Source: Blepharisma stoltei ATCC 30299
Taxonomy: Eukaryota; Protista; Ciliophora
Direction: 5' to 3'
DNA length: 64,000 nucleotides
NCBI GenBank assembly: GCA_965603825.1
Contig: CBFDEM010000027.1
Span: 558,001-622,000 of the forward strand
Positions 24,014-47,335 of this stretch are shown one piece after another. Position 1 is the first letter of the stretch. Each line of letters opens with the position of its first letter. The notes beneath the pieces were generated by a model that saw nothing but the letters and a program-made list of their open reading frames with translations, was not told the DNA's origin and made no database searches. Both the position numbers and the translations under genes were made by a program.

Positions 24014-24346
24014 TTATGAGATTTGATTTCCAAAATTTGGAGTTTTAGGTTTTGCTTGAGGAGATAAAAATAAAAAGTCAGAATTTGTCATAGCTCGCTC
24101 AGCATATCGTGAAAAATTATTTTTAGTTTCATCCTGATTAGTATATTTAACATCATTTTCAAAATTTCCTACACTGCTTTTATTGTTCTCATTTTCTATG
24201 CAGGATTGTGAGTCTTGATCTAATAGAGGTCTCTCATCATAAAGCTGATTTTTACTTGACACAAATTGTTCTGAAAATTTCAATTGAGCTATGATGAATT
24301 CTCCTTTTTCGTGATTATATTGGCAACAACCCATAGAAGCTCCCAT
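24014..24346 (-). CDS. Small putatively acylated protein (MGxxxGCC)
   Basis: 110-aa ATG-TAA ORF flanked by AT-rich spacers. Confidence 0.55.
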   Translation of the reverse strand: MGASMGCCQYNHEKGEFIIAQLKFSEQFVSSKNQLYDERPLLDQDSQSCIENENNKSSVGNFENDVKYTNQDETKNNFSRYAERAMTNSDFLFLSPQAKPKTPNFGNQIS

Positions 24347-24644
24347 TTCTGTGCTATTTATTTATATTTAAAATTCTAATAATTATTATAATAAGCCAAG
24401 CTGAAGCCCTGATAATCTCTGATAAAAAATTCACTTTGGAAAAAGCTATATTAATTTTGCTTGGCAAAGCTAGCATTTATTCTTTTTAAGGTTTCTTTCA
24501 AAAGAAATCCTATGCATGCAATTTTAAAGATTCATTATTAGATAGAATTATTTGAAATAAACTGCATTCGAAGAAGTTTAATATTTTCCTAAAACATCTT
24601 ATAAAAGTGTCTGGCCTGACCTATTCGTGAATTATAATTTTAAA

Positions 24645-25978
24645 GTGAGAGAAATAATATCAATTCATATTGGCCAAGCTGGTATTCAAGCTGGAAATGG
24701 TTGCTGAGAACTTTTTTGCTTAGAGCATGGAATAAAAAGTGACAGGCAATCTTCAATAAGAGATGTAGAATGTGATGATAAGTTTACTACTCTTTTTGCA
24801 GAGATTCAAGAAAATGAATATGTTCCAAGATCACTCTTTATAGATTTAGAGCCTACAGCCATTAACGAAGTAAAAAGAGGAATAAACGGCAGGCTATTTT
24901 TCCCTGAGCAATTTATTTCTGGTAAAGAAGACGCTGCAAATAACTATGCCAGGGGATATTATAAAGCAGGCAAAACCATTATTGACGAAAGTCTCGATAA
25001 AATACGAAAAATTGCTGAAAATTGTACAGGATTGCAAGGATTCTTTATTTTTGATTCCGTGGGAGGTGGGACTGGATCTGGATTTGGGTCTTTATTGCTT
25101 GAAAAGCTTTCATCCGAATATTCGAAAAAAACTAAATTTAGCCTTGCAATTTATCCTTCTCCAAAGATTTCAACTTCTGTAGTAGAACCTTATAATTCAG
25201 TCCTTGCTACATATAAATTACGTGAATTCGCTGATATGTCTCTCGTACTTCACAATGAAGCAATTTATGACATATGCAATCAAAAATTAGATATTGAGCG
25301 ACCAACCTACACCAATATAAATAAAATAATTGCACAAGTAGTTTCTGGCATGACAGTATCCCTAAGATACTATGATTCCTTAAATGTAGATTTATATGAA
25401 TTTAACAAAAATCTAGTACCATTCCCAAAAGTGCATTTTTTGCTTTCATCTTATGCTCCTTTTCTTTCAACTGTGCGAGCATACCATAAAGACCCATCAG
25501 TTTTTGATATAACAGATTTAGCTTTTGACAGCGCACATATGATGGCAAAATGTGACCCAACAAATGGAAGATATATAGCCTGCAATTTAAAATATATGGG
25601 AGATGTAATACCAAAAGATGCAAACGCAGCAATAATTAAAGCGAGAGAAAAACTTAGGATTCAGTCTGCTGACTGATGATATGTAGGAATAAGATGTGGA
25701 TTTTGTTATAATGCGCAATAGTTTTTCCTGGGGGAAATATGGCAAAAATGGCAAGATCTGTATTCAACATAAGCAATCACTCATCTATCGTTCAATTATT
25801 TTCAAGAATTAATAAAGATTTTGATTTGATGTATACCAAGAAAGCTTTTCTTCATTAGTATCATAAAGAAGGAATGGAGGAGGAAGAATTATATGAAGCC
25901 AGATATGACATGTCTGCTCTTATTAATGATTACAAAGAACTTGAAGAAAATCCAGATGAAGAAGAAGATACTAATTAG
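24645..25978 (+). pseudogene. Divergent alpha-tubulin-like copy 1; GTG at codon 1, 1-nt deletion near 25716-25718, nonsense TAG at 25856-25858
   Basis: (V)REIISIHIGQAG, GGGTGSG; frameshift relative to copies 2/3 and TAG at the conserved AFxH-W-Y Trp. Confidence 0.75.
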
Positions 25979-26248
25979 GACATAAATAATTAATATTTTA
26001 AATTATTTTATTTTTAGTCCTGGCTATTCCAAGCAAAGCTTGCAAAGATTCCTAAACTTATAGACTAGATTCTCAAGAGTATGAAAAATGCTATTTTCTA
26101 TTAGAAATATATAGCTAAGATGTTCTTGGAAAGAGATTATTTTAATAATTTGTATTTTTAAATTTTTAGGCTGAAATAAGAAGAAAAACTTATTAAGTTT
26201 AACAATTAATCTACTGCAAGGCTATAAATAAAACTGATATAAATTAAT

Positions 26249-27550
26249 CTGAAAGAAATAATATCAATTCATATAGGGCAAGCTGGAATTCAAGCTGGCA
26301 ATACTTGCTGAGAACTATTTTGTATGGAGCATGGGCTAAAAAACGATAGGCATTTTGCCAATGAAGGTGATCCTTATGATGATTGCTTAACTTCTTTTTT
26401 CGCAGAAACTAAAGAAAATGAATATGTTCCAAGATCACTCTTCATAGATTTAGAGCCTACAGCTATTAACGAAGTAAAAAGAGGAATAAACGGCAGGCTA
26501 TTTCTCCCTGAACAATTCATTTCTGGTAAAGAAGACGCAGCAAGTAACTATGCCAGAGGGTACTATTCAATAGGGAATAGAGTAATCGACGAAAGTCTCG
26601 ATAAAATACGAAAAATCGCTGATAACTGCACAGGATTGCAAGGATTCTTCATTTTTGATTCTGTGGGAGGCGGGACTGGATCTGGATTTGGGTCATTATT
26701 GCTTGAAAATCTTTCATCTGAATATCCCAAAAAAACTAAATTTAGCCTTGCAATTTATCCTTCTCCAAAGATTTCAACTTCTGTACTTGAACCCTATAAT
26801 TCAGTCCTTGCAACACATCAACTGCGTGAGTACGCTGATGTAGTTTTTGTGTTTGATAACGATGCAATCAATGATATATGCAAGCAGCGATTATATATTT
26901 ATCAGCCATCCTATACCAACTTAAATAATATAATTGCTCAAGTAGCTTCTGCAATGACTGCATCCATTCGATATGAATCTTACATGAATACAAACTTGCA
27001 TGAATTTCAAACAAATCTCGCTCCTTATCCAAGAATGAAGTTTATGCTTTCGTCTTATGCTCCATTTCTTTCTTCTGAGCGGGTGATCTATGAAATTCCT
27101 TCAGTTTCAAATATAAGTGAATCAGCATTTGAGGCTTCAAGTATGATGGCAAAATGCGACCCAAGAGAAGGAAGGGCTATTTCTTACAATTTAATGTACA
27201 GAGGAGATGTAGTACCAAAAGATGTATCTATATCAGTAAATGCTGCAAAAGCAAAAGGGGCTTTTCAATATAGCAATCAATATACCAATATTTTAAAATG
27301 TGGGACTACCTATTCACAACCTATGGTGCTTCCTGGAAGCTGAATGGCAAAGTTATTGAGATCTGTATTGTATATTAGTAATAATTCAGCAATTACCAAA
27401 GTATTTTCACGAATTAATAAAGATTTTGATACAATGTATAGAAAGCAAGCATTCCTTCACTGGTATTGCAGAGAAGGAATGGAAAAGGAAGAATTCTGTG
27501 AGGCAAGGCATGATATTACAGATATTGAAAAAGATTATGAAGAACTATAG
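26249..27550 (+). CDS. Divergent alpha-tubulin-like copy 2; CTG at codon 1; lacks acidic tail
   Basis: (L)KEIISIHIGQAG, C-W(TGA)-[48 protein letters not shown]; open frame with TGA=Trp. Confidence 0.8.
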
Positions 27551-27706
27551 GAAATACAAAGAAGGAGAGAATGATATTAAGTATCAAAGAAATTCAGTAT
27601 AATTATTATGCATATAAGTCTTTTATTATTTCATATCCTTCCGAAATTATTTTTATGATTTTTTTCCTTTTTAAGACACAATAAATTAAAATGAAAATAA
27701 ATTAAT

Positions 27707-29047
27707 CTGAGAGAAGTATTATTAATTCATATTGGGCAAGCTGGAATTCAACTTGGAAATGCTTGCTGGGAACTATTTTGTTTGGAGCATGGATTAAAAA
27801 ATGATAGGCATTTTGTTAATGAAGATACTCCTTATAATGATAATTTTACAACCTTTTTCGCAGAAATTAAAGAAAACGAATTTGTGCCAAGATCAGTTTT
27901 TATCGATTTGGAGCCTGCAGTTATTGACGAAGTAAAAAGAGGAATAAATAGCGAGTTATTTCTTCCTGAACAATTCATTTCTGGAAAAGAAGATGCTGCA
28001 AGTATTTATTCTAGGGGATACTATACAATTGGAAAAGAAATCGTAGACGAAAGTTTAGACAGAATAAGAAAGATAGTTGAAAATTGTATAGGATTTCAAG
28101 GTTTTTTAGTTTTCAATTCAGTAGGAGGCGGAACTGGATCAGGCTTCAGTTCTTTATTGCTGGAGCGGCTTTCAGTTGACTACGGAGGAAAGCCTAAGAT
28201 CAGTTTTCCAATTTATCCTTCTTCAACTACATCAACTTCTGTTGTTGAGCCCTACAATTCAGTCTTTGCGACTCATAAGCTAATTGAACACTCTGATGCT
28301 GCTCTTATACTTGATAATAAAGCACTTTACGATATATGCAACTGGCAACTAGCCATTGACAAGCCAACCTACACAAGTATAAACAGTTTAACTTCACAAG
28401 CAATTTCCTCTATAACTTTATCTATGCGAGCTGGCGGGGCATTAAATGCAGATCCATACGAGATTAAAAACAACATGGTCCCATACCCAAGAATTCATTT
28501 TCTGTTTTCATCATACGCTCCACTATTTCCGTCAACTTGCACACCTTATAGTCCAAATTGCTCAGAAATAACGAGTCGTTGTTTTGAGCCTATATATATG
28601 ATGGCGAAATGTGACCCTGGAAACGGAAAATATATGGCAATCAGCTTGATGTATCGTGGAGATGTTGTACCTAAAGATGTATCTGCATCAATTGCATGAA
28701 TGAAAAGTAGAAGAAGCATAAATTTTGTTGATTGATGTCCAACAGGGCTGAAATGTGGGATAAATTATGAATCGCCAACAGTGATCATAGGTGGCGACAT
28801 CGCTAAAATGTCGAGATCGGCACTTATGGTCTGCAATCATACAGCTATTTCAGAAGTTTTTTCGAGAATTAATGGTGAATTCGATTTAATGTATAAAAAA
28901 AAGGCTTTTGTTCATTGATATACAGCTGAAGGAATGGAAGAAAGTGAATTTGCTGAAGCGAGAGAAGATTTAGCAGAACTTCAGGCTGATTATAAAGAAT
29001 GTGCATCGGATAATGTTGATGAAGATACTGCTGAAGATGAGGGTTAA
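27707..29047 (+). CDS. Divergent alpha-tubulin-like copy 3 (446 aa); CTG at codon 1
   Basis: (L)[29 protein letters not shown](TGA)-CPTG, AFVH-W(TGA)-Y..EGMEE.EF.EAREDL, acidic tail, TAA. Confidence 0.85.
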
Positions 29048-31827: not shown

Positions 31828-33465
31828 CTAAGAATTATCATCTTTACCAGTTCCAATTATACTCTCATACTTCTCTTGTAAGACCTGCCTAGTTGTTATA
31901 TCTTCATTAACATTTTTAGGGAGAGCTTCCACACTTGTAGAGTGACTGCTTGCTATAAGTTCCTCATAGTCCTCTTTATGCGGCTTCAAGTTCCCTTTCC
32001 TCTTAAGTTCTTCTAGAAATACTTCATTAATAGCTTTATTCAACTTTTTCCTTATATCCTGCACATCTGTGGCTTCAGAAATGCGGTATTTCAGTCCGTT
32101 TACTGTTGTGTCAACTGATTTTCTTATGAATTCTAAAAATTCGTTCCTCACAATTTTCATGTCACTTTTGATCATAGAAACCATCTCATTTTTAATCACA
32201 TATATGCAGAAATTCAAAAAAATGATTTGTTCCCATAGCTCCATAGGTGTATCTTGGTTCATTAGCTTCAAGAAATAGTTCGAGTCCAGCAATAAATACT
32301 TCTCCCATGGCTCTGTTTTTATGTTAAGCTTAGATCTGGCTTCTTCAAGCTCCTGCATTTGTTTAAGGTCAGAAAAAATCTCAATAAATTCTGCTCTTAT
32401 TGACTGCAAAATAGGGTGCTGCCAAATAATTGGGATTTTTTTACCTTTGGTAAAGTCTAATGAAGGACGATTATCAATAAATGGCTTTTTAATTGTCTCA
32501 AAATTAATAACTTGATTGACAAATGAGCGCATATGGACTGCCATTCCTAATGATAAAGTATTGTGAATATTATCTTCGCTGTTTTCTTCTAAAATAGTTA
32601 CTGAGGTAAGCGAAGACTTATCAGATAAGTATTTTGAATGCTCAAAAATCATATTTGCTATATTTGTCGGCATTAGCTTGTATTGGTAAAATAAGGATCT
32701 CTCGATAAATGTGTGGTGGAGTAAATCATTGATAAGTAAAAAGACATGGTTTCCTTGGTCCCTTAAATAGCATGCATGAGCCAAAGCAAAGTAGGGTGTG
32801 AAGTATTGGGAAATGTCAGAGCTCAGGTGCTTTGATGAATAAATGACAGAGTTTGGGGAATTTATATAAGCCTGCAACGCACTTGCATTTATATAAGGAT
32901 TTGGGTTTGCAATAACAACTTTATGATTGTCTCCTGCATTTAAAAATTGTTTGGCAGCACTCATGGCAAGCTTTGTTTTCCCTAAGTTTGATTTTCCATG
33001 TAGCATTACTGATTGGCCATAACTTAAAGGCTGCATCAAATCTACTTGCAAAAATCCACTCGTCAGCATTTTAGTGCATGGTAAATGCTTTAGGCTCGGC
33101 TTTAAATTAAGAAATTTGCTGAAATCGAGGCCTTCATTTTTTGGAGATAGAGGATGCAAAATTGTATTTGCAGCGTTGACTGGGACTTGGAGCTTGAAAT
33201 TTATGTCAAGTGTGACGTCTCCTTCTAATTTTTCAATTTTTTCGCTTAAACATGCTGCTAGCACCTTTTCTTCAAGTAAAGCAAAAACCCATGCGTGATT
33301 ATCCCCAATTTTTACAAAGTCACCTTTTTTTGCGGCATTTAATCCAAAAATCGACACAATGTTATCTGCTTATCATTTACTTTTCACAGAGTCTACATAG
33401 CCTTGAGTTGGGCTAAGTTCTCTCAGATTTTTAAGACTGCGAGAGATCCTTGCGGCTAAGGCCAT
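31828..33465 (-). CDS. Highly divergent F1-ATPase alpha-subunit-like protein; intron 33366-33380
   Basis: TSGFLQVDLMQPLSYGQ, Walker A GKSNLGKT, QYFTPY..YLRDQGNHVFLLINDL, SLTSVTILE align to F1-alpha blocks; basic presequence MALAARISRSLK. Confidence 0.75.
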
Positions 33466-44962: not shown

Positions 44963-47335
44963 TTAATAGTTATCAGAAAGTTTAGCCTTTTTCAAATACT
45001 TCCCTAGGTCAGCGAACATAAACATAGCTGGTTTTCTCCATTTGAATTGTCCAGTTATACATGAGATCATGTAGTTGTTTAGTAACTTGATAATCCAGGT
45101 GTCGGATTCTCGAGGTCTTTTTTGTCCATTTTGGAGGTTTTCGACAGCTTCCCAATATACTAAAGCGCTTTCTCTATATATAAGGACTTTAAAATTTGGA
45201 ACCCCTGAAGTTCTTTGGATTTTATAGTCGGTATGCAAGAGAGTTTCTGTGAATTGTAATTTATGGACATCAATAAAAGCTACTTCATGGGAATTTATAA
45301 CGAACCGGAGAGGGAAAGGAGGCTTATAGAACTTGTACATAAAATATTGTATAAGGGAAAAAGAATTGCAGGTTATATCATGATTTCGTAGTGAAAATTC
45401 TTGGGGATAGAGGTAAATTTTGGTACCTCTTTCTTTAGGGAAAAGTGAATCGTAGTTAAAGTGGCTTCTGTTAAGAATATTCATTAAGTTTGGTTGGGAA
45501 ATATCTTTGTTAGGGTATACTGGCTGGTTTAGCTTGTCAAACACAATAAAAAAGCAAGGGACATATAGGTCTGTTTTTTCAATAAGTGCAATAGATAAGA
45601 ATTCTTCTGTTCTGCTAAAAATTATTGCTATTGGTGAAAGCTTCATCATTGGAACCAATAAATTTTTTCCACTAGTCCCAACACAATAATTTCCTACTTC
45701 CTGTGGATTTAACTCCAGCTTGCTTGAGACTTCTAAAACCATCACTTTTGTATCCAAATTGCTAGAGTCCCACGATTTCAGCATTTTTTGTCTGATATCG
45801 AACTCTCCATCCTCTTGATTCTCAGGCAAAAATTCAAAATCCATCGGCTCAGCTTTCGGAATTATTTTAATAATTTTGCCTTTCCTCATATTCACAGTCC
45901 CTCTAGAGTTAATTCCAACTACCCCTTTTCCTATAATATCACATATTTTCGAAAGCGCATTAAAATCATTTAAAAATTCTTTCCCCATCCCTTCAATAGC
46001 AGAAACCGGGATACTTGCCTTGCAGAAGAAGTTCATTCTTGGGTACCCTATTTCAGGAAACCTTTTCAAAAATTCGCATGTGCCCTGAGAATGGCCACAA
46101 AGGGCGCACATATGACTTTGCAGCTGTTTTTTGACAGGCTTATTATTGATTTGTTCAATTTTGCTTTTCCCAAAGGACAACACAGCCATTTCATTTTTCG
46201 CAATTTTTTCATTCCCCATTCCTCCAAATATAAAAAGTGAATTTTTAAAAGTCGCAGCTGAGTGAGCCATTCTTCCAGGAATATAATTCATAGGCTTAAT
46301 TTCATTTCACGCATTTCTTTCAATGCTATAAACCCATATATCGCTTACTGCACCTTTCGTAGAACATTCTCCTCCAAAAACTATAAGAAAATTTACATTT
46401 AAAGGAGACATTGAGTGGGAAAGCCTTTTTGGTGGACAATTATCGCTGGTTATGCGTCTGCAAATTGCTGCATCATTTTTTATTTCAATTTCAAAAAAGT
46501 CATTGGTGTATTCGTCGACTTCAGAGGAAAGGTGGCTGGTGTTTCCTCCAAATATCCAAAGTCTGTCTTTAGTGGAGGCAAAACCCATGGATTCTCTATG
46601 GCCTGGGTGATCTCCTTGCCATTTCAAAGATTTTCATTCAAAAGTGTTCAGATTCATAGAAAAAATATCATCTAAAAGGCCTTGAGAGCCACTTCCTCCA
46701 TATATGATCATTTGGCTTCGGATCACTCCAGCAGCGTGTCCATCTCTCCCAGTTGGTTTGGCTCCAGTTGTTTTGTATTCATCCCAAGATTTGGTGTTTA
46801 TATCTAGCACCCAGACGTCATTGTAAGGCTCAGTTTCGCCTTCTCCACCTTCACATCCTCCAAACACAATAAGCTGCTGCTTGTAAGGAATCATAGAATG
46901 CCCTTCCCTGGGCTTAGGCAAATTCGTAGTTTTCATTGAAAAAAACATTTTCGGGCCAAGCTCAAGCACGTGGCACGAACTTCTGGTCTTTGAATCGGTC
47001 CCTCTCCCGCCAAAAAGATACAATTTCCCTTCAATTTTAGCAGCTGCACATCCCCATCGAGCTAATGGTCTTCCGCTAACTAAATTACAATTACCTAATG
47101 AAGGAACAATTGTCCATTTGCAGCTTCATGATTCAGAATCTTGGTTTCTGCCAGCCCCACTTGTAGTGTGTAACTGGGAAATTAGATCAGAAATTGACAA
47201 GTTATTGGACCTCGAATTGTTTAGAATTTTGTAAAACTAAGTGAATGCTACCTTTTCGTGCTCTTCTGAGGTCAGTTGGAGCAGGTTGCAGTTAATTGAA
47301 CTTGAATCTGAGTTCGAGATGTCCATATTTTTCAT
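44963..47335 (-). CDS. Kelch-repeat protein with C-terminal degenerate MORC-like (GHKL/S5) module; introns 47237-47251, 47080-47094
   Basis: Six Kelch repeats (R-x-GH, YLFGG/IVFGG, W by TGA); C-terminal blocks resemble MORC. Kelch call is strong, MORC call moderate. Confidence 0.75.

Follow-up and report, generated by a model that had tools for sequence, protein, structure and literature searches.

Divergent alpha-like tubulin genes in tandem in the ciliate Blepharisma stoltei, two of them putatively initiated at CUG

Main open reading frames (ORFs) that are translated only from a near-cognate start codon are known in animals, plants and fungi, with eIF4G2/DAP5 (GUG), TEAD1 (AUU) and the yeast genes GRS1 (UUG) and ALA1 (ACG) as examples; among near-cognate codons, CUG and GUG initiate best in yeast and mammals. 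Noncanonical alpha-like tubulins have been described in Tetrahymena, where they are extra, fast-evolving paralogues approximately 55–65% identical to the canonical isotype. Here we describe three alpha-tubulin-like genes (c1, c2 and c3), arranged in tandem, head-to-tail, on the + strand of a 64,000-nucleotide (nt) stretch (hereafter the window) of the somatic (macronuclear) genome of Blepharisma stoltei ATCC 30299. The codon aligned with Met1 of tubulin is GTG in c1 and CTG in both c2 and c3. On balance, we consider it somewhat more likely than not that c2 and c3 are CUG-initiated minor alpha-like tubulin genes and that c1 has died recently.

The published B. stoltei genome has a size of 41 Mb, contains introns that are predominantly 15–16 bp long, and reassigns only UGA, which encodes tryptophan; we read TGA as Trp throughout, and searched 41.46 Mb in 64 contigs for tubulin loci. 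In the translation of the window, conserved Trp positions are written TGA. The first copy, c1 (24645–25978), has its GTG at 24645–24647 and a terminal TAG at 25976–25978. The second, c2 (26249–27550), is an open gene of 433 codons running from CTG (26249–26251) to a TAG stop (27548–27550), and the third, c3 (27707–29047), is an open gene of 446 codons running from CTG (27707–27709) to a TAA stop (29045–29047). The tubulin GTPase domain (PF00091) is recognised in each (E-values 4.7e-61, 1.5e-63 and 3.4e-62 for c1, c2 and c3, respectively; all scores above the 33-bit curated cut-off), and Tubulin_C (PF03953) is among the precomputed Pfam matches on the annotated fragments of c1, c2 and c3.

In each copy the start codon precedes an R/K-E-x-x-x-I-H-I-G-Q-A-G sequence. 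The initial annotation had drawn attention to this GTG/CTG/CTG series ahead of an intact N-terminus, on which direct reading and translation agree, and to the full open frames of copies 2 and 3, which are borne out by the codon counts given above. All three start codons keep TG and differ from ATG at the first base only; ATG is found at the homologous position in 27 of the 27 other tubulin-superfamily loci of the genome and in each of 79 environmental (metagenomic) alpha-tubulin loci. An in-frame TAA is located two codons 5′ of the CTG in c2 (26240–26242, + strand), where it excludes an N-terminal extension, and a second is read directly from the sequence at the same distance from the CTG of c3 (27698–27700, + strand). 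The upstream frame of c1 is open for 13 codons and contains no ATG, the nearest in-frame stop being a TAA at 24603. A 14-nt run that includes the CTG is identical between c2 and c3, and approximately 30 nt of the c2 5′ flank (26219–26248, + strand), carrying a TATAAATA-like element, are homologous to the c3 flank (27677–27706). The TAAT context ahead of the CTG is the same as that ahead of the ATG in several other tubulin genes of the genome. The first in-frame ATG is codon 198 in c1, codon 26 (26324) in c2, and codon 240 (28424) in c3; among the long ORFs of the window c1 and c3 stand out, with the first ATG at codons 218 and 241, respectively, of the stop-to-stop frame. Taken together, these genes have a near-cognate codon at the homologous start, an in-frame stop upstream of it, and no AUG that can be reached by splicing (see below).

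All three copies align collinearly from end to end with the canonical alpha-tubulins of this genome, to which they are approximately 57–63% identical. They belong with alpha- rather than beta- or gamma-tubulins by their position in the tree, by the presence of the alpha-specific 8-residue S9–S10 insertion (a gap in beta), and by their best database matches, which are alpha-tubulins (the TGA-containing proteins were searched as TGA-free pieces). In a maximum-likelihood tree they form one clade, (c3,(c1,c2)), with 99/98 support, inside the alpha family and sister to a divergent paralogue (L017). The alignment reveals that T1 GQAG, T4 GGGTGSG and the T7 catalytic Glu254 are kept in all three, whilst N101 (T3) is replaced by Ser in c2 and c3, and D251 by Asn in c2. 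At the Lys40 (K40) position there is no lysine and the loop carries a 2-residue deletion in each copy; c2 ends right after DYEEL (after H12), and the tails of c1 and c3 are short and unlike the canonical acidic tail. Having neither the K40 loop, nor an acidic E/G-rich tail, nor an ATG initiator, the copies do not qualify as canonical (axonemal-type) alpha isotypes, and would be best explained as a tandem cluster, specific to Blepharisma, of noncanonical genes for alpha-like tubulins.

The first copy is a pseudogene. A 1-nt frameshift at 25719–25720 (+ strand), after codon 358, leaves two bases of the codon for approximately residue 361 and moves the frame from 0 to 2; before and after this break, c1 still aligns collinearly with c2, c3 and the canonical genes. 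An in-frame TAG at 25856–25858 (+ strand) then replaces the invariant Trp407 of the FVHWY motif, where c2 has TGG and c3 has TGA. We considered whether TAG might be read as sense, as in the old NCBI table 15, and rejected this, since the genome paper reassigns UGA only; we likewise rejected a 17-nt GT..AG segment as an intron that would repair the frameshift, since its removal would take out conserved residues that align collinearly across all paralogues. Disabling lesions of this type are confined to c1; apart from the start codon, no lesion is present in c2 or c3.

The three copies have not evolved neutrally. With the Goldman–Yang (GY94) codon model, the ratio of nonsynonymous to synonymous substitution rates (dN/dS, omega) is estimated at 0.20 over the three copies; the neutral value, omega = 1, is rejected, twice the log-likelihood difference (2ΔlnL) being 224. 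For the first 88 codons, which include the start and lie upstream of every in-frame ATG in c1 and c3, omega is 0.23 and omega = 1 is again rejected (2ΔlnL = 32). Purifying selection has acted upstream of the first in-frame AUG; its timing, we infer, extends beyond the loss of the ATG. Pairwise Nei–Gojobori (NG86) values among the copies lie between 0.27 and 0.34, with bootstrap intervals below 0.45; the c2–c3 value is 0.27 (bootstrap range 0.18–0.38). The most similar c1–c2 tracts have a proportion of synonymous differences (pS) of 0.175 and an omega of 0.11. Per-branch dN/dS was approached by three-taxon distance decomposition.

The history of the start codon is informative in this context. 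The most parsimonious history has CTG at the root of the clade and a single later C-to-G change in c1. Had the starts been lost independently, the first base would have been hit three times, twice by the same A-to-C transversion, against an AT bias that is reflected in a G+C content at third codon positions (GC3) of 0.21–0.25 in these genes. We infer that the CTG codons of c2 and c3 are identical by descent, in which case both frames have been open for a time well beyond what neutral evolution would permit. Over the first 60–90 nt the start regions of c2 and c3 are 13–15% different, with a pS of 0.25 over the first 30 codons and approximately 18% of the flank different. In a neutral simulation on c2 and c3, which was AT-biased and did not count indels, approximately 54 new TAA/TAG codons arose per unit divergence per gene, and the probability that a frame was still open fell to 0.07 at 5% divergence and to no more than 0.015 at 10%. 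The tally of lesions is consistent with this. The stop and frameshift lesions in the cluster number two to three in total, all in c1, and correspond to roughly 1% neutral divergence, a level that predicts approximately 0.03 start losses per gene, against the three observed. Judged by the simulation rates, this excess over the neutral expectation suggests that the start changes were not part of the recent decay.

A mechanism can be outlined that would accommodate these observations. In the common ancestor of the cluster the initiator ATG would have changed to CTG within the usual TAAT-ATG context. The c2 and c3 genes would still be working, with a scanning (cap-dependent) ribosome on a very short AT-rich leader starting at the CUG, which has A at −3 and A at +4. 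Acceptance of the initiator Met-tRNA at this CUG, the presumptive initiation site of c2 and c3, would give a full-length tubulin with a normal Met-Arg/Lys-Glu N-terminus. Output would be lower than an AUG would give, which implies a reduced dosage. In c1, the CTG would later have become GTG, with the frameshift and the nonsense codon following in its recent death. The CUG start may act as a hard-wired throttle on translation, holding at low stoichiometry a minor tubulin that is potentially poisonous; a reduced yield as the selected function is purely conjectural. It is conceivable, and we propose it tentatively, that the subfamily was kept through at least two duplications and a long divergence whilst being translated exclusively from CUG.

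The initial annotation had proposed a family of tubulins initiated at non-AUG codons, and had described untranscribed genes with a dN/dS near 1 as plain pseudogenes. The first proposal is supported for c2 and c3, in view of the shared CTG, the omega values of 0.20–0.23 and the open frames, but falls for the pseudogene c1. With regard to the second, neutrality is rejected among the paralogues; c1 is broken by its frameshift and TAG. Overall, the evidence favours the view that c2 and c3 were kept after their ATG was lost, which would fit near-cognate initiation.

Several observations weigh against CUG initiation of working genes. In the literature that we searched, neither a ciliate gene nor any tubulin is reported to have a non-AUG start, and a search of the protein database and of metagenome contigs found no relative of more than 63% identity, with only canonical alpha-tubulins matched. 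The c2 protein is without the DWCPTG strand motif, D251, N101 and the acidic tail, and its branch (0.31) is as long as that of the dead c1 (0.30). In c3, an out-of-frame ATG lies 16 nt upstream of the CTG and would capture scanning ribosomes if transcribed; it opens an upstream ORF (uORF) of four codons (ATG AAA ATA AAT TAA; 27691–27705, + strand), which ends 1 nt 5′ of the CTG, and the equivalent position in c2 has no ATG. It is also possible that c2 and c3 underwent two recent parallel A-to-C changes. Finally, the divergence profile is a mosaic, with a c1–c2 mismatch of 3–8% at codons 61–90 and 131–180 and of 30–60% elsewhere, and with the similarity between c2 and c3 greatest over codons 1–90. 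This shows that gene conversion has taken place, and it could have spread the CTG. The converted tract has since diverged by 13–15%, however, so the argument from the open frames holds.

The strongest alternative is that the whole cluster is dead, c1 visibly so, and c2 and c3 freshly inactivated with start loss as their sole lesion so far. Consistent with this are the frameshift and nonsense codon of c1, the missing motifs and tail of c2 together with its long branch, and the omega values of 0.2–0.3, which are far above those of canonical tubulins (0.066 for the other alpha-family paralogues fitted together); moreover, the genome holds other decaying tubulin copies (a fragment with three kinds of stop codon and a split locus, L027), and the annotation pipeline yields truncated models only. 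A dead cluster would, however, need either three independent hits on the first base of the start codon or one old hit. An old hit is incompatible with frames that are intact after the divergence of the start regions, the probability being approximately 0.03–0.07 per gene and below 0.005 for both. Start losses are approximately 30-fold over-represented relative to stops and frameshifts, and A-to-C and A-to-G changes run counter to the AT mutation bias. The rejection of omega = 1 for the start-containing 5′ region also argues against it, and we consider death of the whole cluster the less likely reading. Were it nonetheless the case, the locus would neatly illustrate how tubulin genes are born and die in a ciliate macronucleus, with little wider interest.

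A good deal less probable is that an ordinary ATG is hidden, by a long or non-GT–AG intron, in another allele of the polyploid macronucleus, or behind an assembly error at the first base. Our intron search paired each upstream ATG with each GT donor and AG acceptor wherever the tubulin frame would be kept. This exhaustive search found no 15/16-nt GT–AG intron able to supply an ATG for c1, c2 or c3, and no GT–AG candidate intron of any length for c2; for c1 and c3 the only GT–AG candidates, which lend the idea some support, are 94–608 nt long and have poor splice sites, in a species with introns predominantly of 15–16 bp. As a positive control, the same script recovered an ATG-restoring 15-nt GTAA..AG intron in six of seven Ras-family loci without an ATG in the first ORF, and the negative result for c1–c3 is therefore meaningful; the earlier statement that neither an upstream in-frame ATG nor a 15/16-nt intron supplies a Met has held. 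If 16 nt were removed from c3, AGA GAA would follow directly on the ATG at 27691, but GT..AG ends are missing from this segment at each of three possible boundary placements, and c2 is without an ATG there. Furthermore, the RNA sequencing (RNA-seq)-guided annotation places no intron in c1–c3. With respect to an assembly error, the assembly is from PacBio HiFi reads, none of the three sites is a homopolymer, and two of them are mutually consistent.

Three other routes to a start were tried and rejected. Tiny introns that interrupt the initiator (AT-intron-G or A-intron-TG) or directly follow it (ATG-intron) are absent from c1–c3. A +1 frameshift out of the c3 uORF (AAT TAA T) would leave c1 and c2, which have no such uORF, unexplained. 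Readthrough or reinitiation from c2 into c3 would be in the same frame, but several stops intervene.

Features of other genes also came to light. The Ras/Rab loci L034, L038, L039, L052, L054 and L057 have a common 15-nt GTAA..AG intron after codon 6 (e.g. MANPEY/DYLFK), and the closeness of this intron to the start hides the ATG of these genes from a naive ORF scan. Two long stop-to-stop ORFs of the window, at 31828–33369 and 44963–47236 (both − strand), have their first ATG approximately 100 codons in, and are probably multi-exon genes with tiny 5′ introns.

In the public annotation of B. stoltei every gene model is made to begin with ATG, and the models for the three copies start exactly at the first in-frame ATGs, giving 161 amino acids (aa) for c1, 408 aa for c2 (model P0121 on contig CAJZBQ010000027.1 of GCA_914767885.1) and 207 aa for c3. 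That only these N-terminally truncated proteins are made, c2 from Met26 and c3 from Met240, is the least credible reading: it matches the public models, and the first downstream ATG of c2 is in frame, but the c2 product would be without the T1 loop GQAG and that of c3 without the whole GTPase domain, the first ATG downstream in c1 and c3 lies in another frame and begins a very short ORF, and codons 1–88, upstream of the internal ATGs in c1 and c3, are under purifying selection. We regard as reasonable the initial annotation's argument that no functional product would come from the next ATG; these ATGs are codons 198, 26 and 240 of c1, c2 and c3, respectively. Three small ORFs are also annotated at or beside c1, at 24946–25182 (+ strand, 78 aa), approximately 24014–24346 (− strand, 110 aa) and approximately 24632–24862 (− strand, 76 aa); the 78-aa model sits within the c1 coding region in a different frame, and these small models look like artefacts of forced ATG starts near an ATG-less gene.

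Further tubulin loci elsewhere in the genome are of note. A further tandem pair of divergent alpha-like tubulins, both with ATG, lies on contig C35 (623579–626817; L020 and L019), with a synonymous divergence (dS) of 0.08 and an omega of 0.48; the frame of L020 ends early, at 426 aa, without the end of H12 and the tail, and this copy may be decaying or contain an unrecognised intron. On contig C2 (208821–212267; L009 and L014) there is a tandem pair of near-canonical alpha-tubulins with a dS of 0.13 and an omega of 0.33, in which L014 carries several nonconservative changes, such as Gly to Trp in the EHG motif, suggesting relaxed constraint on one copy. A tubulin fragment on contig C39 (590087–590554) has TGA, TAG and TAA inside the match, and L027 on contig C11 (501105–501733) is split into two matches; both are likely to be further tubulin pseudogenes or intron-containing genes.

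If CUG initiation of c2 and c3 is correct, they would make up the first cytoskeletal gene family to be initiated at a non-AUG codon and, for ciliates, the first main ORFs documented to have a near-cognate start, and start-codon stringency in a heterotrich ciliate would be such as to permit near-cognate main-ORF starts. It would also follow that gene callers that accept only ATG truncate or miss such genes, as the three public models here, all truncated, would exemplify. The dosage of tubulin isotypes, which is normally controlled by co-translational mRNA decay, could then also be set at initiation.

The locus can be compared with several known systems. The first copy, c1, resembles ordinary tubulin pseudogenes in its frameshift, its nonsense codon and its missing ATG, whereas c2 and c3 differ from such pseudogenes in that the start codon is the sole lesion and dN/dS is significantly below 1. 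With eIF4G2/DAP5, TEAD1, GRS1 and ALA1 the B. stoltei case shares a single near-cognate codon with A at −3 and A at +4, an in-frame stop just upstream, retention of the codon in evolution, and constraint on the coding sequence 5′ of the first AUG; those starts were proven by mutagenesis or ribosome profiling, whilst the present case is proposed from sequence evolution. The closest likeness in protein terms is to the noncanonical tubulins of Tetrahymena, which are similarly divergent additional paralogues, with altered GTP-site and interface residues and without the tail motifs for glycylation and glutamylation; the B. stoltei copies are also without K40 and its loop, and c2 without the acidic tail. 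The Tetrahymena genes are described with ordinary initiator codons and support from complementary DNA (cDNA), whereas those of B. stoltei have CTG or GTG and form a tandem array in which one member is dead. Noncanonical alpha-like tubulins and near-cognate-initiated genes are each known separately, and the novelty of this locus probably lies in an alpha-like tubulin that would be initiated at a near-cognate codon.

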